A stretch of 63,627 nt of DNA, the filler included, from Trichosphaerium sp. ATCC 40318 (taxonomy: Eukaryota > Protista > Tubulinea): assembly GCA_038496445.1 (NCBI GenBank). It is 3 parts of 3 records of this genome, joined end to end, with 100 filler letters (N's around TTAATTAATTAA, not from the genome) between each part and the next. Parts side by side here need not be neighbours in the genome. Positions count along the whole stretch, not along the records: positions 1 to 26,397 come from JALMLS010000134.1; 2 more parts are not named here. One strand, written 5' to 3'. Made by a program: the position numbers and the translations under genes. Within the stretch, counting starts at the first letter, position 1, and the number at the start of each line of letters is the position of its first letter. The notes beneath the pieces are model-generated. The model searched no databases. It saw only the letters and a program-made list of their open reading frames with translations, and had not been told where the DNA came from. Below are positions 311 through 16,942 of this stretch, piece after piece.

Positions 311-2368
311 ATGTTCCATTTGGCAGTAAGAGTCCTATTGTTTGTATTTGCCGCCATTGTGTTAGGCCATAATGGATACAAGGCCGCTGTGGTTGAGTAT
401 AGCCCCATTTTACCCCCATATAATACAACAAGCAAGTTAGATGCCTCTACGGCGATGTTGAAGAACTTGGCACTGTATCAAGTAGTTATTACAAAGCGAT
501 GCCTGTTTACGCGTGTATAGGACTTCGCTTGTACAGCGAAAGCATCTGGAGCTGAAATAATTGTATTTCCAGAGGATGGTCTATATGGACCTCTATTCCC
601 TACCAGGTGAGTTGTAAATAGTCACAATTGCTAATTTAAATACTAGGGACAGCATTTTACCGTTTCTAGAAGCGATACCGGACACTACAGTGACACCATG
701 CACAGAATGGTCAAATGATATTTCAAAACAAGTGCGTAGCTTTTTGTTATCCACCGTGGCGCCAGCGTACCTCATACTCATCGTAAAATCAGCGACATAC
801 TTGAGTACTCATGTCAATCGTCATTTTTTTTTATTTTGGCTTAGCACGTGACTGATTATGATTTATTGCTAATTGTTTTTCCGCTTTTTTGTAGAAATCT
901 TCTCCTACGCTTTTCAAAGCTAGTTGTATAGCTAGAGATGTTGGTATATACATTGTGCTTGATATGGGGGATGTACAATACTGTAGTTCATCAAATGATG
1001 TAAACTGTCCACATGATGGGCGGTATCAGTTTAATACGCAAGTTGCTTTTTCAAACAAAGGCGCTATTCTTCAAAAATACCATAAAACGCACTTATGGTT
1101 TGAACCTCAGTTCGATACACCAGTAAATCAATCACCAAAGTATTTTGATACAGATTTCGGTACGCTTTTTGTGTTGATGAAGAAATTGTTTGTATTTGTT
1201 GTTAACAATTTTTTGGCAAAAGGTGTTCGCTTTGGTATGAGTATATGCTTTGATATAATGTTTGAGCACCCACTGATTGATCTCATAAGTTTGGGTATTA
1301 CAGACTTTACTTACTCAGCGTGGTGGGTCAATACGCCGCCCGCTTTAACAGCAACACAAGTAAGTTGAATATTGCAGCTCAAAGTTACTCAAAAAACTAG
1401 TTTGTTTTGAGTTGTACTTATATGTGGTAGGTCCAAAGCGCTTTTTCATTATTCAGAGATGTCAATCTTCTAGCTTCAGGCTCTGGGCATAGTTGGTAAG
1501 GATCGTACTATGTCAAACTCACAAATTAATGTACTATTTCAGGTTTAATTCTGGATCTGGTATTTATAGCAGTTCGACGGTTTTGCAGACTTTCTTCAAT
1601 CCATCAGGGAAAGGCCAGTCTAAACTCATGATCGCAGAAGTACCAGCAAACAACGTTAAAGTAGTAGAGTACCAGGAAAAAGTGCTTGAGCTCGCTACTG
1701 GTGTCAAGTTGGGTACCGGTTTTACCTTTTAATTGTATTTTCGAAAAGGGAACAAAGAGCTTATTCTTATTTTAGACAAGTTCAAGTCGATAGAAATCAA
1801 TACTTCTGATATCACTGAAGGTTCAGTTACGATAACACAAGGCAACACTACGTGCTCATTAGAGTACAAAGTAAAGTAAGCTCTTCTTGTTTTATCATCC
1901 TTAATAACCTCTACAAAGGCTTCCTGGTGTTACAGATAATCAAAGATACATACTAGCAATACTAGATGGAGAATTAGGCATACTGAAAACAGTAGCTTGC
2001 TCTTTTCTTGTTTGCCAAAAAAAGTATGTACTTTTTTCTTATTTTTTTCAACAAAAGTGGAGTCTTACGTCTTTGATGAATCATTAAGTTATTGACTGTT
2101 TTATTATTGTAGAGGACATGATAGAGATTGTTTTGGTAAAACTAATGAATTGAGTTCATCTGTTGTATTTAGTTCAGTGTCTCTATCAACGACAATGAAT
2201 GTCAAAGGTGTAAATACTTTCTTGCCTGTTGCATCTTCTGATCAATCTCAACTTTTTCCTAATGATGCATTTCAGTTCACACGTGGACCTAACAAATCAT
2301 TTACTTATACTTCTTCCAAAATCGGTAAATCCCTTTTGAACATAGGGATATTCGGCCTTCATTTTTAG
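311..2368 (+). CDS. Vanin/biotinidase (pantetheinase)-family carbon-nitrogen hydrolase, secreted, multi-exon
   Basis: Signal peptide MFHLAVRVLLFVFAAIVLG then YKAAVVEY. Nitrilase triad motifs IVFPEDGL (~560), KYHKTHLW and ICFDIMF are intact; CPHDGRYQFNTQVAFS is typical of vanins. Exons are separated by short GT-AG introns. Confidence 0.9.
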
Positions 2369-7952: not shown

Positions 7953-8715
7953 CAAGGAAATACTATTAAGGGTCTAAATTAGATTCAGTAGAAGTCCATA
8001 TTGAATGCCAAAGTAAAGGAAACCGCAAATTGTTTGGAGTTATGACGTAGTTTGAATCCAGTTGTTTAATCCGTATGCACTAATTAAACGAGGATTGTGG
8101 TTAGAAGCTTATATATTGTTACATCTGCTACAAAAATACCAAGGTATGCCATTGCCGCCGGAGCAATTACCTACTGAACAAAAGCATGATACTGTTAAAA
8201 GCGGATTGGGTAGTAAATACGAACATGGCAACTTATCAACTTTTAGAAACTTTATACTTTTGAAAAGCCTCTGCTAGGAGAAATTGTTACAAGCGTTTTA
8301 ACACGTGACTCTTAAGCCCTTTGTCAAAAAATTCATAAGTGTCACCGTGCTTGGTTTTTATTGTGATTCAAAAATACTTATTGCCTCCCATTTACAACAC
8401 TTCACGAGCATGAGTAAGAGTCTTAGTCCATCGGATTACATAAAGCTATTAAGTACAAAAGGCAAATCACTAAAATCAAACCCACTTCGGTCTCTTGACG
8501 TGGTATTTAACGCACACGATGATATGGTAACAGTTCTTTATCTAAGTTCGTTTATTACCTCAAGTTTTATAGATTAGCCTTGGAAATGGTCAGCCTGAAC
8601 CAAATGCAATACCTATAACTGGTATAACAATCAAATTAAAGTCAGGTAAGAAAAATCGTTTGTAATGTCAATTGAACCTCACATAGGAGAATCTATTGAT
8701 GTTTCTTCGCCTATG

Positions 8716-8809
8716 TGTAAGGACGCTTTATTGTAATTAAGTCAGACCTTTAAGACGTATAATAAAGTTAACCTTTATCCCTATCACTCGGACTACCATA
8801 CCTCTTACA
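8716..8809 (+). repeat. 5' LTR of element 1 (94 bp)
   Basis: TGTAAG...CTTACA terminal inverted ends; contains TATAATAAA; identical to 14304-14397. Confidence 0.97.
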
Positions 8810-8810
8810 G

Positions 8811-8824
8811 TGGCGACACTGAGC
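8811..8824 (+). promoter_or_regulatory. Primer-binding site of element 1
   Basis: TGGCGACACTGAGC starts 1 nt after the LTR and is complementary to a tRNA ending ...GUCGCCA. A Ser-type tRNA is inferred, not shown. Confidence 0.8.
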
Positions 8825-8870
8825 AGTTTAAACAAACCAGGAGCATACAGTTACGATTTACGACATTACG

Positions 8871-10004
8871 ATGAACAACAAGAAAGTACACGATATTGAA
8901 GCATACATACCATACAACAACCTTCAAAACGGAACATGGGTATCACGATGGAAAGGAAAGAACAGCTTCACGGAAACACACCTAGTTAAAACCAAGAAGA
9001 CGTTTACCGGCAAAAGAAGCGATTTGCCACAATTTCTCACGAATTTGAGGTTGCTCACAGAAGATGCCGAATTGAGTGAGAAAGGGTTCGTTCTATTTCT
9101 CGAACAAGCGATTGGAAGCAACATCACCACGCTTATCAACGATTGCGAAAGGAAGGCACGCGACAAGATCGAACTATTGGTCAACAACCTCTTTCCCGAA
9201 GATATCATGCGTACGTTGCACATAGAATTTATTAGTGCGACACAGAACGAAAATGAAAGCATTTTGAAATGGTCTATTCGAGTTTCAGAAAAAGGGCGTA
9301 TGGTTAACGCTACCAAGAAGGAGATCGCTAGAAGGTTTCGAAATGGCTTTCGACAAGAATTGAAACTCAAAGTCGACCTCGAGTACGCCAACTACACCGA
9401 TGAAGAGAAGGACGCACTCACCATCAGCGAAATCACGGTAAAAGCTCAAAAATATGTGAAACGCGACAACAGTATCATGGAAGGCGAAGCAGAGGCTATG
9501 AACTATACCTCGAACAAAAGGAAGTACGAAGAACCACCAAGACGTAACAACCAAGTACGAGAGAACAATTACGAGCGAGAAAAACGTTTTGGCACCGGCA
9601 GATTCGACCCAAGGAAGCGTAACCGACGTACCAACACGAGAGTCTATTACGAGGAGTCTGGCGTCAAAGTTGTTGTCTCTGGCGATAACAAGTATCGATT
9701 CACGGCAAAAGGAGAACCGATATGTAGCGGATGTGGACGCTCTCGACACATTTGGCGTAAGTGTTACAACAACCCAGACCGCGAAGAAGATGCACCATCG
9801 CAGTACTACCCAGAACCAGGAAAGCGCCAGAACAAGAACAACGGTGCCAGTAAAGAAGATGTAAACGTCGTCGAAGAAGAAGAAGATGACGACAACGTGT
9901 TTGCCAATACAGATATTAATTTTGATTATGATCGTCTTTGTTTGTTGAGTGAGTGTTTGCGTTTGCGTTGTTGTGTTTTGTGTTTACGTGTGTGTAGAAC
10001 CTGA
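8871..10004 (+). CDS. gag: Gag of element 1
   Basis: 377-aa ORF right after the PBS, with capsid-like QNENESILKW motif and CCHC knuckle CSGCGRSRHIWRKC. Confidence 0.92.
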   Translation: MNNKKVHDIEAYIPYNNLQNGTWVSRWKGKNSFTETHLVKTKKTFTGKRSDLPQFLTNLRLLTEDAELSEKGFVLFLEQAIGSNITTLINDCERKARDKIELLVNNLFPEDIMRTLHIEFISATQNENESILKWSIRVSEKGRMVNATKKEIARRFRNGFRQELKLKVDLEYANYTDEEKDALTISEITVKAQKYVKRDNSIMEGEAEAMNYTSNKRKYEEPPRRNNQVRENNYEREKRFGTGRFDPRKRNRRTNTRVYYEESGVKVVVSGDNKYRFTAKGEPICSGCGRSRHIWRKCYNNPDREEDAPSQYYPEPGKRQNKNNGASKEDVNVVEEEEDDDNVFANTDINFDYDRLCLLSECLRLRCCVLCLRVCRT

Positions 10005-13000
10005 GGATGAAAAGTGTTTACTGACTAGTGCAGAGTCTGCTGCCGTTAAGGAAAATAGATTTATTATCGATGCTTGTTGTGCCCTAGAGTTTGACCAGAG
10101 TAATGCCAATTTTATGAAGCTGTGCGGTTATGAATTTGGTTGCAAGGATGCATGCAACAGTACTACAAACCATGAATACCGATATAGTATACTGAAGTCC
10201 ACGTGCGTCATCAAAGATACGAAAATGAATGCTGTGTTTGATACAGGTGCCTCGGTTTCGCTGATTGATTTGAAAATGATACGCAAATTGGGTTTATTGG
10301 GATCAGTTACAAGACAGTACATGCGACCACTATACTCAGCCGACAATCAACGCATCAAGACATACGGAGTCATCTCGCTGAAGGTGAAGGTCGGTGGTAT
10401 ATTTACAATTGCAGAATTACAAGTTATCAAAGACTTTAAATACGACATTCTCTTGGGTATGAATTACATTACAGACGCTGGTTGTGTCATCGACATTGGT
10501 AACAAAAACATCACGCCACAAGGAGGATGGCCAGTACCAATACAAACAGTGCGACGACGTATCAACCCACAACAAGTGCACGTGCTCACAACAAATGCGA
10601 TAAAATTAGCACCATACAGCGAGACAATATTCATGGCTAAAGTACCACAAACTGTCAGTGGTACATGTGGTATGATTACAGCACATAAGAGTTGCATCAC
10701 ACCAGGTACATACCTCATACGGAGCGTCAGCAAAGTCAGGAAAGGACTTGCACAAGTACAAATATTAAACGCGACGAACAGAAGGATCAGTTTGAAGCCA
10801 CGAATGGATATAGGATCATTCAGCAGTATACGAGAAGAAGACATTGTGAATAACATAGACGAGAAAAGAGAAACAGTGTTAGAAAGAGTTAATGAGATGC
10901 TAAAGAAGAAACGCAGCGACGAAGAGATCGCACACATATACAAATTGTTTAAGATACAGAGTAAGAAGCTCACGAAGCAACAGAAGTTAATGGTAGCCGT
11001 ACTACATCACGAATACAAAGACCAATTCGACGAAAAGTTAGATCCGAAGAACCACGTCACAGCCGTCAGACACAAGATAGAAACGGACAAGAACAAAGAG
11101 CCGATAGCAACGCCATACAGATACATGACACCACTCAAAGCCGATGTTATTAGGAAGGAGATCAGGAAGCTACTAGAACAAGGAATAATAAGAGAATCAA
11201 AATCACCATGGTCGGCGTCAGTAGTATTAGTCAAGAAATCAGATGGAAAATGGCGCTTTTGTATAGATTTTAGAGAACTGAACAAGATTACGAAGAAAAC
11301 AGTCCACCCAATACCACGCATCAACGAAGTACTGGATGCGACAGCGCTATCAATTTTATTCTCGACATACGATTTGACGAGTGGATATTTTCAGATCGAC
11401 AATGAAGAAGAAGATATTGAAAAGACGGCTTTCTCCACGATAGACGGACACTACGAGTTTGTGAAAATGCCAATGGGCCTCAAGAATTCAATGGCCACAT
11501 TCCAGAAGTTAATGAACTTGACGATGTCTGGACTATTATGGAAGATATGTTTATGTTACGTTGATGATATTATAATATTCTCAAGATCATTTCAAGATCA
11601 TATCATCAACACTGCGTTAGTGTTAGAAAGAGTTAAGCAACAAGGCCTCAAGTTAAAAGCCAGTAAGTCGAAGATATTTGAAAATCAAGTACAATTCCTA
11701 GGATACAGGATATCAGCAGAAGGAGTATTGCCAAAAGAGTCAAGTATTGAAGAAATTAGAAGAGCACCAGAACCAACGAAGTTTGAAGAGTTATTCAGAG
11801 TATTAGACGTCACCAATCATTACCGAAGATTTGTTAAAGGATACGCACATAAAATACAACCGTTCCAGGGTCTACGGAAGAAGGACGCAGTATGGGAATG
11901 GACCAAAGAACACAGCGAAGCATACAAAGAACTTAAATATGCATTTACGAACCCACCAGTATTGAAACATCCTGACTTCAGCAAGCCATTCGAACTACAC
12001 GTAGACGCGTCAGGATATGCATGTGGAGCTGTTTTATGCCAAAGAGACGAACTTAAAAGAGAACGAGTAATATCGTACTTCTCAAAGAACTTCACAGAAG
12101 GACAAAAGAAATACTCCACCACCGAAAGAGAACTACTGGGGATATGCGAAGCGTTAAAGAACTATAAAGGCTATTTAGCGTATACGAAATTCACGCTAGT
12201 AGTATTTACGGATCACGAACCACTCACGATGATGTCACGAATCAACACGGTTAAGAATGTTATAGCTAGATTATTATTAAGTATACAGCAGTTCGAATAC
12301 GAATTAGAATATAAGAAAGGAAAATTACACATAGTACCAGACGCATTATCGAGAACTCCATTCGCCACAAAGGAGACAGTCAACGCGATAGATATGTATA
12401 AGAAGAAGTTACATGTACAAGGACACAACGATTCAGGAATAGACTGGAAAACATTACAAGACAACGACGCAACAACACAAGTATTTATACAATTTTTACG
12501 AGAAGGGAAGATTAGCAGAGCAATATTAAAGTCAAGAGGATTTATAGAATCCACATTTTACGCACAAGCGAGAGACCTAAGAATTGATGACAAAGGCATA
12601 CTATACAGGAAGGATCCAACAAAAGCAGAAGATGAGATATTCCAAATATACGTACCCAACATCGTTAAACTGAAGAGAGCCATATACAAACAAGCACACG
12701 ACGCACCGTTCTCAGGACACTTAGGCTTTATAAAAACATACGACAGACTACGAGAAAGATTTTATTGGCCTAGATTATACGCGGATACAAAAGAATGGTG
12801 TAGATCATGTCCGTCATGTTTAAGAACGAAGACGCCAAGATTAAAGAAAGCAGGCAAGATGGGAGGAAAGTTCGGAGCTAGTTACCCGTTTGAGCTAGTC
12901 ACCATGGACATAGTAGGACCATTGAACAGAACAGGAGCAGGAAACAAATACCTATTAGTCATTAATTGCAACTTTACGAAATGGGTAGAAGCGTTTGCCA

Positions 13001-14253
13001 TGAAGAACCAAGAAGCGACAACAATTGCGAAGATATTTGTCAACGAATGGTGTTTCAGATATGGAATACCTAACACGATATTAACCGACCAAGGTAAGAA
13101 TTTAACAGGAGAGATTATGAAGCAAGTGTACGACATATTACACATCAACAAAAAGAGAACGACAGCATACCATGCACAAACGGATGGCCAGACGGAACGA
13201 TTCAACCACACATTAATAGAGATGATACGACACTTTGTAGACGATGATCAAGATGATTGGGACATTTGGATCGAACCATGTTTATTTGCGTATAGAACAG
13301 CGATACACTCAACCACGAAATATGAGCCGTACAGATTACTATTTGGCAGGAAACCAAGAATACCACTAGATGTCATAGCAGGAAACGGTGGATTACTAAA
13401 GAACAAATACAACATGAGCGACTGGGCTGAAACACTAGCACACAGACTGAAATCAGTACATGAGATTGCGAAGAGAAACACGTTAGCAGAGAAAAGGAAA
13501 CAAGCAGAATACTACAACACAGGTAGAAGAACAGTAGAATACAAAGTAGGACAGAAAGTATGGTTATACGTACCACATATTAAAGAAGGGCAAAGAAAGA
13601 AGTTGACACAAAAATGGCAAGGACCGTTCGAAATATTAGAGAAGATCAGCGACATTACTATAAGACTAGACATACCAGAACATAGGAAGTTATCAGAAGT
13701 AGTACACGTAGAGAGACTGAAACCACACATAGATTCATACTTGAGGCCACAAGAAGACATAGAAATAGATACGAGGGATATATACAAGCAACAAAGAGAT
13801 AAATATAAAGAGATAACTGATCCAGGAGAGGATGACGATACCGAATATAAAGAGAATAACGAATTAGAATCAACAAGAGCAGTAGCGAAGAAGATAGAGG
13901 AATCTACAATCAATAGCCCAATGGAAATAGAGGGAACGACAACAAAAAGGAAAGGAATGAGAAGAAGAGGAACAAAGATGACCAGAACGACACATTTAAA
14001 GAAGTTATTAGAATACATATACGGAGTATCAAAGAACCTGTCAAACGATAAACTAGCCAGCATGTTGAAGGAGTTAGTAGGAAAAGGATCGAGATACATA
14101 AGAAGTAGTACCAAGTGCGAGGAGCTAGAAAGCGAGATTAAATATAGCAAAAGAAACGGTAAAGAAGAGCTACGGAAATGGCTAGCGGAATTCATAGCAA
14201 ACTTTGAGAAAACCTTAACGGAAGAATTACTATTAATGATACAAGAATGGTGA
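9998..14253 (+). CDS. pol: Pol of element 1 (protease, RT, RNase H, integrase, C-terminal extension)
   Basis: FDTGAS; YVDD; DASG/TERELL/TDH/DALSR; HHCC (AHDAPFSGH..CPSC); MDIVGP/TDQG/GQTERFN; GPF. The ORF track starts at GTG 9949, in the +1 frame relative to gag. Confidence 0.96.
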
Positions 14254-14292
14254 GAACTGATCGTCATGATGAGGGACCATCATACTTACGTT

Positions 14293-14301
14293 GGAGGGAG
14301 A
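14293..14301 (+). promoter_or_regulatory. Polypurine tract of element 1
   Basis: GGAGGGAGA ends 2 nt before the 3' LTR. Confidence 0.85.
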
Positions 14302-14303
14302 TT

Positions 14304-14397
14304 TGTAAGGACGCTTTATTGTAATTAAGTCAGACCTTTAAGACGTATAATAAAGTTAACCTTTATCCCTATCACTCGGACTACCATACCTCTTACA
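14304..14397 (+). repeat. 3' LTR of element 1 (94 bp)
   Basis: Identical to 8716-8809. Confidence 0.97.
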
Positions 14398-16942
14398 TAT
14401 GGTAGCGAAAGGTGTAAGCTACTCCACAACTGTACGCATTTTTCCGAGCTATTGAAAATTATTTTACGAAATCACGTGATCTTATGTTTTTTTCAATTTC
14501 TTATCAACACTAACAAGTCTTGCAATAGAAAGGTATTCACGAGCTACTAGAGTACCTCACGCAATATCAAAAAGATCTGCATAATCCTAAAGGTGATTGG
14601 GACGTTTGCACACTTGCTGGTACATATCACAGATGATTAAAAGGGCCTCATGCTTGAATAGGAAGTAAGGATGGTATAGGAAAGATATTGAAGATTTTAA
14701 CTGAAACAGGAGACACAATACTATGCTCAGAGGTTCTATACTAGTTAAGTTCTTTTATCACTTGTATTTAAAAGTAGTTACCTAATCAATCAAATAAATA
14801 GTGGAGCAAAGGTTACTCGGGAACAATGTGTTTGGCATGGTATACCAATAGATGAGGATGGTATTAAACCGGATTTGTTAAGGAAGACACTAGATGATTG
14901 GCCTGAAGATAGCAAAAAACCAAAGGTTTACCAGAATACGCTTCGGAGGTTATCTTACTTTCGATTTTAGGTTCTTTATGTAGTACCTACAGGACAAAAT
15001 CCAACAGGAAGTATTTTACCTTACGAAAGACGTAAAGAATTATTGAGTATAGCTTCAGATCATAACCTAATAATAATTGAGGATGACCCATACTGGTTCG
15101 TAGAATTTTCTTAGTTTGTTGGACAAATGAAACAACGTTTTAGGCATGTCTGTCTCGGATGTGAGAAGCCAGTTGAAAGCTTATTATCAATGGATACAGA
15201 AGGAAGAGTGCTAAGACTAGACTCTTTTAGTAAAATCATAGCACCAGGGCTTCGTCTTGGGTGGGTTACAGGGCCAAAGTATTTGGTTGATAAAATAGAA
15301 TTATTGAACCAAGGAGACATTATTCATCCGTCTGGTATGTAGAAATACTTCAAGTTTTAAACATACTTTTATCTGGATTCTGTCCAAGAGCGTAAACTTA
15401 CCAGTAATCACAAACACCTTTTTGTTAAATACGCCATTGGTATTTCACACTCTTGTTCAGAAACTACAATATCGCTCATAGCATTTGTTGACTACAATGA
15501 AATACAGCAATTCCTCATTAATTGTTATTATAAGGTGTCAGTCAAGCGATTGTGCTATCAATACTAAAACATTGGGGAAAGGAAGGCATAGAACAACATT
15601 CAAAAAGTATAAGAACAATATACACTTCAAAGAGGGATGCTTTGATTTCTTCATGTGACAAGCACCTCAAAGGATTAGCAACATGGGTTATTCCTAAAGG
15701 AGGATTTTTCCTATGGCTAAGATTGACTGATGTAGAAGACACTGAGGAGCTTGTACGCAAAGAAGTAGTAGCATCAAAGGTACATGTTCAACATTTAAAA
15801 TCTTCTCATTTCACGCTTACGCATACACTTGCTTTTAGGTATTGCTCAGGTGGGGATCACCTTACACAGCATCGGGGGACAAATCATCGTGTGTTCGGAT
15901 AGCGTATTCTACAGCATCTAAAGAGGTACCAAACAGTTTGTTTTTGTAATTGTATTTTTGGTTGTTTCTTTTTATCACGTGATATAACTATTTAGGATAT
16001 GGAAGAAGCAATAAAAAGACTTGCGACTATTCTTACAAAAAGAAATAATAAGTTGAAGTAAAATGTTTGTGGATATAAAAATATGGTCCAGAGTGTAAAA
16101 CATAATTTCCTGGTATTGTCAGCAGTTTATAATGCTTGAGTGGAAATTGCGTACAGCAGTAATTGGCGTCTTATCGTAATCATCCTGCAAGTGGCCATCA
16201 TTGGCCTAAATAGTACAAAAGTAGAGCCTACAACATGTTGCACAAAACAGTCCTCATTTGAAACTTAGTGTCCGTGGCAGTCAAGTTAATGCCAACAAGT
16301 GACTTTTTACAGAACTTGCAGGTTTTTGTCAGACCTAGACAATCCGACGGGATCTGACAGTTGACAGAACTTACATGTGATTCAGGTGCAGTACAAAAAA
16401 AACAAATCTGTAACAAAGCAAAAAACCGTAACATGATAGCTATTTACTACATTCTGTTTATAGCCATTTTCGGCTGAAGCGTATGATGAGAAGGTAGCGT
16501 TACAAAATGTAATTGCTTCTGTTTTTCTTGCTCAGAATGGTTTCTTCCAAGCAGTACAAACTTACAGTTCGTTTTGAAAGTGTATAGTTAACCAACAAAC
16601 GTGTAACTTCCAAGGAGTGTAGTACTGTTAACGGTACGACTCAACTCGATTTTTTGAGAAAAAACGGTGGGACACAATGTAACAGAGATGTACCTCAATG
16701 TTACGTCGTAAAAGGAGATGAAGACGACTAGCAGCGTGATTAGAGTAAGTCCACAGGATTTTACTGTATTTGACCGGTATAAAAGCGTTACTATCACCAT
16801 AAAGCAACTAGTTCATAGTACGATTACGTACCTTAAGTGACAAATGCCAGTTTCAATGGTACATGGCGGAAACACAAATATGTAGAACTTGTCAAAAAAA
16901 AAGTCAAAAATTCGGCACTAATTATCTTATATTATGCCATAG

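Follow-up and report, generated by a model that had tools for sequence, protein, structure and literature searches.

A candidate 49-nucleotide intron at the gag/protease junction of a young Ty3/gypsy retrotransposon from Trichosphaerium

The stretch of DNA analysed here (63,627 nucleotides (nt), filler included, from the assembly GCA_038496445.1 of Trichosphaerium sp. ATCC 40318; hereafter the window) contains at positions 8716-14397 a complete and very young long terminal repeat (LTR) retrotransposon of the Ty3/gypsy type (about 5.7 kb), in which gag and pol lie in different frames and a GU-rich stretch of 49 nt at their junction is a candidate intron (Table 1). The element shows the marks of the Ty3/gypsy group (Metaviridae), which are LTRs with TG...CA ends, a 4-bp target site duplication (TSD), the domain order protease (PR), reverse transcriptase (RT), RNaseH and integrase (IN) in pol, and a gag with a zinc knuckle. 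The gag protein found no match in a Pfam search, and the open reading frame (ORF) is called gag because of its position and its zinc knuckle (CX2CX4HX4C, at 9723-9764), and because it is homologous to gag-pol ORFs of relatives in their N-terminal part. Its C-terminus reads ...CLLSECLRLRCCVLCLRVCRT up to the stop (in a longer extract, ...DRLCLLSECLRLRCCVLCLRVCRT).

The pol frame is +1 relative to gag, as the first-pass annotation of this DNA had stated: a TGA at 9946-9948 closes it upstream, it is open from 9949, and it overlaps gag by 56 nt (9949-10004). The candidate intron (in full, GTGAGTGTTTGCGTTTGCGTTGTTGTGTTTTGTGTTTACGTGTGTGTAG) fills positions 9949-9997 of this overlap, and its length is one more than a multiple of three (3n+1). 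The arithmetic of the original proposal stands when read off the sequence: deleting the stretch joins A9948 to AA9998-9999 and gives TTG TTG A/AA CCT GAG (CLL-K-PEDEKCLL) in the pol frame, keeping it in the RNA leads the gag frame to the TGA of 10002-10004, and the second acceptor that had been pointed out, a CAG ending at 10033, gives 85 nt, which is likewise 3n+1 and restores the pol frame. As in Ogre-like elements, the candidate intron separates two ORFs, and removal of either 49 nt or 85 nt restores one polyprotein frame. The stretch is also A-poor (A3 C3 G18 T25) in an A-rich element (38% A), another feature already recognised at first reading; it is the sole spot in the element where 49 consecutive nt hold five or fewer A (the mean over such spans is 18.8), and it is a unique outlier of composition within the element.

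A second copy of this element, which we call A1, lies at G000:C484:7029-12710, with unrelated flanks and a TSD of its own (GCTA). It is 99.89% identical to the window copy and carries the identical 49-nt stretch and the same frame arrangement. The two copies differ at six sites, namely position 83 of the LTR (counted in both LTRs) and four coding positions. Because position 83 is altered in both LTRs of one copy, the two are separate retrotransposition products, and because the second insertion shares the arrangement of the junction, this arrangement is neither an assembly slip nor the private lesion of one dead copy.

A more distant sister element is found at C296:28555-22885 (minus strand; 78% DNA identity, 99-nt LTRs with one mismatch, TSD GCGG), and it encodes gag and pol in one ORF of 1828 aa. 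Between the sister and the window element synonymous divergence is saturated (dS >2) and the ratio of non-synonymous to synonymous divergence (dN/dS) is 0.03-0.07 in gag and pol, which indicates that both lineages have long been under purifying selection; runs of 30 nt in the region of the primer-binding site (PBS) and of 78 nt in the region of the polypurine tract (PPT) are shared letter for letter. The stretch homologous to the candidate intron is 57 nt long in the sister (GTGAGTGTTTGCGTTTGCGTTTGTGTTGTTGTGTACCGAGTGTTGACGTATGCGTAG), in frame and free of stops. A refined alignment divides it into three zones. At the 5' end the first 20-21 nt and the four preceding bases of the putative exon are the same in both elements (TTGA/GTGAGTGTTTGCGTTTGCGT); at the 3' end the last 18 nt match at 15 of 18 positions, including TT[T/G]AC and GTAG/A (GTGTTGACGTATGCGTAG/A); and the middle accounts for a net length difference of 8 nt. 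Six other indels separate the two coding regions (9, 6, 3, 6, 3 and 3 nt), all multiples of three, and the sole indel of another length falls inside the 49/57-nt stretch. Conserved ends around a middle of free length are the pattern that would be expected of a short intron. The first-pass annotation had asked that other copies keep the GT and AG ends and a 3n+1 length, which is true of the second insertion; the sister keeps the GT and GTAG ends, but with 57 nt. It had also taken copies that are simply in frame as a sign against splicing, and such is the case in the sister, while the second insertion keeps the offset. Downstream of the stretch, positions 9998-10033 are a 36-nt in-frame insertion relative to the sister, and the CAG/AGTCTG at 10033 resembles the TAG/AGTCTG of the sister. 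The insertion encodes PEDEKCLLTSAE, which echoes the end of gag, DRLCLLSE (D-x-x-C-L-L-S/T), and it may be a partial duplication of the junction.

For comparison with the host, we collected 34 introns from four tubulin genes, one FtsZ gene and the aminotransferase gene adjacent to the element, using conserved exons as anchors, and scored donors and acceptors with a matrix built on this set. The host introns range from 40 to 166 nt (median 53.5 nt), and therefore 49 and 57 nt are both typical lengths, in agreement with what had been said of the 49 nt. They contain a YTNAY motif (CTTAC, CTTAT, TTTAC, CTCAC or CTAAC) 10-20 nt before a TAG, CAG or AAG acceptor, a pattern that fits the candidate, with TTTAC 12 nt before its TAG; in the sister this place is taken by TTGAC. 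With 5.3 bits (host median 5.6), the acceptor at 9997 is within the top 10 of the 528 AGs in the element. Of the 70 frame-restoring GT-AG pairs around the junction, 9949-9997 has the best score.

The donor had been described as consensus, and this description has to be withdrawn for this host: GTGAGT is the textbook consensus, whereas in this host the consensus is G/GTACGT (A at +3 in 30 of the 34 introns and G in three, C at +4 in 21), with ACGUAC in the main U1. The best-scoring host U1 genes start with UUACGUACCUG, with G for U at position 5, instead of the usual AUACUUACCUG, and since UUACGUACCUG matches GTACGT, U1 and the host donor sites appear to have evolved in step. Donors of the GTG type occur in three of the 34 host introns, one of them being GTGAGT. 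The candidate donor fits a canonical-type U1 variant encoded on C289 better than the main U1, and the host may have two donor classes.

Our tentative reading is that positions 9949-9997 form a short spliceosomal intron, spliced weakly and placed between gag and the protease of an active Ty3/gypsy element; we give this reading somewhat less than an even chance. The unspliced full-length RNA would then yield Gag alone, the ribosome reading 18 codons into the intron and stopping at the TGA of 10002, and a minority of transcripts would lose the intron, place pol in frame and yield Gag-Pol. In the sister, the homologous 57-nt intron would be in frame and stop-free, and unspliced RNA would already encode Gag-Pol; the net change of 8 nt within the intron would have converted a single-ORF element into a splice-dependent one. 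Splicing would account for a length change outside multiples of three being tolerated in a lineage under strong purifying selection, for the conservation of both ends, and for the change of frame exactly at the gag/protease boundary. Splicing in a retroelement has to be incomplete, and a weak donor would suit this. Use of these sites by the host spliceosome, partial splicing and any role in the Gag:Pol ratio or in packaging are what we infer, and the earlier idea of a Gag:Pol ratio set by splicing, with copying restricted to unspliced RNA, is speculative. In its most elaborate form, the proposal makes of the stretch a translatable mini-intron that would have switched, in the course of evolution, from an in-frame state as in the sister to a splice-dependent one in A1. 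Its conserved UG-rich 5' block would in addition be the signal by which the zinc-knuckle Gag packages the RNA, confining copying to unspliced RNA and so protecting the intron from loss; we regard this version as distinctly improbable.

Several observations weigh against splicing. The candidate donor (TGA/GTGAGT) scores 3.6 bits, compared with a host median of 8.9 (five of the 34 host donors are lower and 29 higher), and 29 of the 257 GTs in the element equal or beat it. The pair 9949-9997 ranks 23rd of the 1698 GT-AG pairs in the element, and with this rank and 70 frame-restoring pairs around the junction, the splice-like signals alone are not beyond chance. The composition is unlike that of host introns, with 6% A against 25.5% (minimum 11%) and 37% G against 15.7% (maximum 24%). 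The 25-nt run identical in the sister is of marginal significance (for eight identical codons in the context of gag, family-wise p is about 0.03-0.08), and gag has another run of seven identical codons. The stretch of the sister, being in frame and stop-free, may be translated, and the chance of finding it so under an intron-only view is about 0.15-0.2. Most of the differences in the 3' block affect third codon positions in the pol frame, a distribution that coding constraint fits as well. Finally, most gypsy families of this genome have a single gag-pol ORF and no such tract. With respect to the first-pass annotation, the splicing interpretation has thus become weaker in donor quality and composition and stronger on comparative grounds (the second insertion, and conserved ends with a middle whose length change is not a multiple of three in a diverged sister); it is plausible but unproven.

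The main alternative dispenses with splicing and invokes a programmed +1 ribosomal frameshift within the overlap 9949-10004, for which the conserved 25-nt block would be shift site and flanking stimulator; we consider it possible but doubtful. Frameshifting of this kind is the proven mechanism of Ty1 and Ty3 of S. cerevisiae, whose layout is similar (pol in +1, a short overlap near the end of gag, sites of the X_AGU_N type or with rare codons) (PMC5009743). The overlap of A1 is open in both frames, as its A-poor composition allows, and the gag frame offers UUG_AGU_G at 9945-9951, the first possible position (compare GCG_AGU_U of Ty3 and CUU_AGU_U of EST3), a tandem UUG_CGU_U UUG_CGU_U at 9957-9969 with the rare codon CGT (8% of the Arg codons in the element), and an antizyme-like stop context, ACC_UGA_G. 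Moreover, a shift in the 5' block would make the A1 polyprotein collinear with that of the sister (SECLRLR in both, V[Y/D]VCVE in both), and the differences in the 3' block, three out of five of which are at third positions, look coding in the pol frame. The exact heptamers of yeast, CUU_AGG_C and GCG_AGU_U, are however absent from the overlap and the P-site codons differ, AGT is a common codon here (22% of Ser codons), and the block is fully kept in the sister, where shifting to +1 would do no more than stop translation after 18 further codons. No significant RNA structure was found in or after the overlap (folding z -0.1 to +1.7), although the Ty3 stimulator is thought to act without structure and the conserved 25-nt block could do likewise (PMC5009743). 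In a survey of animal LTR elements, pol was in +1 in only 2 of 51 (PMC5009743).

Damage with no special mechanism behind it, that is, a recent frameshifting indel in a slippage-prone, GT-rich coding linker of the kind read in frame by the sister, with the copies mobilised in trans by an unsampled A1 sibling or by an element of the C296 type, is in our opinion unlikely. The tract is of low complexity (GTTTGC GTTTGC GTT GTT GTG...) and indel-prone for polymerases and reverse transcriptase, gag-pol is a single ORF in the sister and in most gypsy families here, and several other gypsy copies in the genome are visibly broken; A1 is known from two near-identical copies only, and all four coding differences between them are non-synonymous. 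Mobilisation in trans is conceivable because A1 and the sister share conserved LTR ends, PBS and PPT regions (in the 30-nt and 78-nt runs), although cross-packaging is less likely because the Gag of the sister is only 70% identical. Apart from the offset, however, both A1 copies are intact, each with ORFs of 377 and 1434 codons and two identical LTRs. Five independent differences between them suggest more than one replication cycle with this arrangement, and there is no in-frame A1 copy in the assembly. In addition, the frame changes precisely at the gag/protease boundary, leaving Gag complete with a stop 18 codons on, as in functional two-frame elements. Pol could also be made separately, by reinitiation or internal initiation at the first ATG of its frame (about 10111, MKLCGYEF...), which lies some 107 nt past the gag stop and upstream of the Pfam protease match (10174). 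In favour of this route, separate initiation is an established feature of LINE-1 ORF2 and, by way of a spliced mRNA, of foamy viruses. A separate start of Pol has also been discussed for TART-B1 (PMC5009743). Reinitiation past an ORF of 377 codons is inefficient in eukaryotes, relatives make Gag-Pol fusions, and the pol frame is conserved and open from that ATG back to the junction, with indels there in multiples of three; we judge it very improbable. Two further mechanisms were discarded. Bypassing of the T4 gene 60 type (a gap of about 50 nt) finds neither matching take-off and landing codons nor a stop after the take-off site, and premature polyadenylation through a GU-rich downstream element would place cleavage before the gag stop.

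In most gypsy families of this genome an open frame of at least 1-1.5 kb precedes the protease as part of a single gag-pol ORF, and no A-poor tract was found at the gag/PR junction of the other gypsy families. Because most of these families are single-ORF and none has the tract, the GU-rich tract is a novelty of one family, and the two-frame state is derived. The linker of the next-closest family (family B, with 47% identity in the protease region) is ordinary A/C-rich coding sequence; a TTGA/GTAAGA at the homologous place in copies on C1, C160, C179 and C535 was considered as a conserved intron and rejected, being absent in the C314 subfamily, where the linker is ordinary coding sequence. A gypsy copy at C150:101733-105680 (L012) also has pol in +1 relative to an upstream frame of 396 aa, with an overlap of 206 nt, but it is no parallel, as the break lies upstream of the zinc knuckle and points to a damaged gag.

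The 19-mer GTGAGTGTTTGCGTTTGCG has exact matches only in the three family-A copies. An origin from an introner or repeat family was dismissed, as the two matches with two mismatches correspond to the control rate and the one on C29 has no clear exon context; the latter (C29:411365-411407, L055) is a 43-nt GT...AG stretch that starts with GTGAGTGTTTGCGTTTG, shares 17 of its first 19 bases with the candidate and is probably due to chance. Outside this genome, a protein word search with the N-terminal region of pol gave nothing at E<=1e-10, the exact Gag protein had no record in the assemblies collection, and scans of metagenome and viral contigs found no relatives of the protease region. The comparison is confined to this genome because these protein, metagenome and viral collections yielded no relatives.

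How a retroelement makes much Gag and little Pol is a core question of retroelement biology. The known routes are frameshifting, readthrough, protein degradation and, in plants, splicing (Ogre, BARE1 and copia-type elements). The A1 arrangement can be set beside that of Ogre, a plant Ty3/gypsy element of the Tat lineage that also has an intron between two ORFs and yields only the upstream product from unspliced RNA (PMC6317226); splicing was shown experimentally in Ogre, whereas A1 has a candidate drawn from the sequence, at the Gag/protease position, of 49 nt and in a host that is not a plant. In the barley Ty1/copia element BARE1, a 104-nt alternative intron at the end of gag shifts the frame and sets the balance of Gag and Pol (PMC3735527), but there the unspliced RNA holds one gag-pol ORF and splicing creates a stop that leaves Gag only, the reverse of what is proposed for A1. 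The sister element resembles unspliced BARE1 in having one ORF, although its frame survives removal of the 57-nt version. Like single-ORF gypsy elements of the Tf1/sushi type, the sister and most gypsy families here have Gag-PR-RT-IN in a single ORF, and the Pfam matches include an integrase SH3 domain of Tf2-1 type; the window element splits this ORF into two frames at the gag/PR junction.

Two young and intact sisters differ in their gag-pol frame only through a change of non-triplet length in a 49/57-nt GU-rich stretch, and this natural pair allows a clean test of the transition from a single ORF to two frames. Splicing of the stretch would mean that a mechanism like that of Ogre operates outside plants, here between gag and protease and with a mini-intron of host size; a frameshift site would add a new +1 signal, found in a host with an unusual splicing machinery; and damage would document trans-mobilisation in a family of very low copy number.

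Table 1. Coordinates of the element, of its gag/pol junction and of the host U1 genes (positions in the window unless a contig is named)
Feature	Position	Strand	Remarks
TSD (TATG)	left 8712-8715, right 14398-14401	+	flanks ...CGCCTATG/TGTAAGG and ...CTTACA/TATGGTAG
5' LTR	8716-8809	+	94 nt, TGT...ACA; 94/94 nt same as 3' LTR
PBS region	8810-8827	+	TGGCGACACTGAGCAG... (TGGCGAC...); abuts 5' LTR; inside the 30-nt run shared with the sister; probable, from position and TGG start
gag ORF	8871-10004	+	377 aa; stop TGA 10002-10004
5' block	9945-9969	+	25 nt, TTGA/GTGAGTGTTTGCGTTTGCGTT; unchanged in the sister (22% diverged); includes the candidate donor as well as UUG_AGU_G and tandem UUG_CGU_U
Candidate intron	9949-9997	+	49 nt (3n+1), GU-rich; GTGAGT...TTTAC-N9-TAG
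3' block	9980-9997	+	GTGTTTACGTGTGTGTAG (branch-like TTTAC and TAG); 15/18 match to the sister's GTGTTGACGTATGCGTAG
Alternative acceptor (CAG)	10031-10033	+	weak, 2.1 bits
pol open frame	9949-14253	+	1434 codons; stop 14251-14253
Protease (PR, RVP_2)	10174-10515	+	Pfam; DTGAS at 10240-10254
RT (RVT_1)	11230-11712	+	Pfam
RNase H (RT_RNaseH_2)	11899-12195	+	Pfam
Integrase Zn (Integrase_H2C2)	12667-12834	+	Pfam
Integrase core (rve)	12886-13170	+	Pfam
Integrase SH3 (SH3_Tf2-1)	13550-13728	+	Pfam
PPT	14293-14301	+	GGAGGGAGA; adjoins 3' LTR; inside the 78-nt run shared with the sister
3' LTR	14304-14397	+	94 nt; matches 5' LTR exactly
U1 genes, main type	C122:19165-19328 (L056); C144:124528-124691, 125555-125718; C100:91164-91327		5' end UUACGUACCUG
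U1 variant	C289:12258-12417 (L060)		canonical ACUUAC 5' end; lower-scoring

Some features of the element and of its surroundings lie apart from the junction. Downstream of the SH3 domain, pol continues at 13730-14250 with about 170 acidic, lysine-rich residues that have no Pfam match and are still under purifying selection relative to the sister (dN 0.10, dS 1.8). Six antisense open frames of at least 120 aa occur in the element, the one at 13512-14267 (minus strand, ATG start, 251 aa, at the 3' end of pol) among them; it is closed in the sister and was dismissed, and it is a by-product of the A-rich coding strand. Elsewhere in the genome, searches gave no LHC matches, no nuclear-receptor zinc fingers and no copy of the 40-nt spliced leader of Oikopleura dioica (sequence from PMC6883708). 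FtsZ genes are present at C56:126393-129587 (L049, minus strand) and C509:16720-18844 (L048); the bona fide FtsZ (...AAGMGGGTG/TGAAPIIA...) has several short spliceosomal introns and an N-terminal extension. These findings in combination point to a eukaryote that is heterotrophic and not an animal. On the two sides of the element lie host genes, a carbon-nitrogen hydrolase exon upstream (955-1368, plus strand) and an aminotransferase class I/II gene (14749-15950, plus strand) that begins a few hundred bases past the 3' LTR and has introns of 45 nt, 59 nt and about 209 nt.

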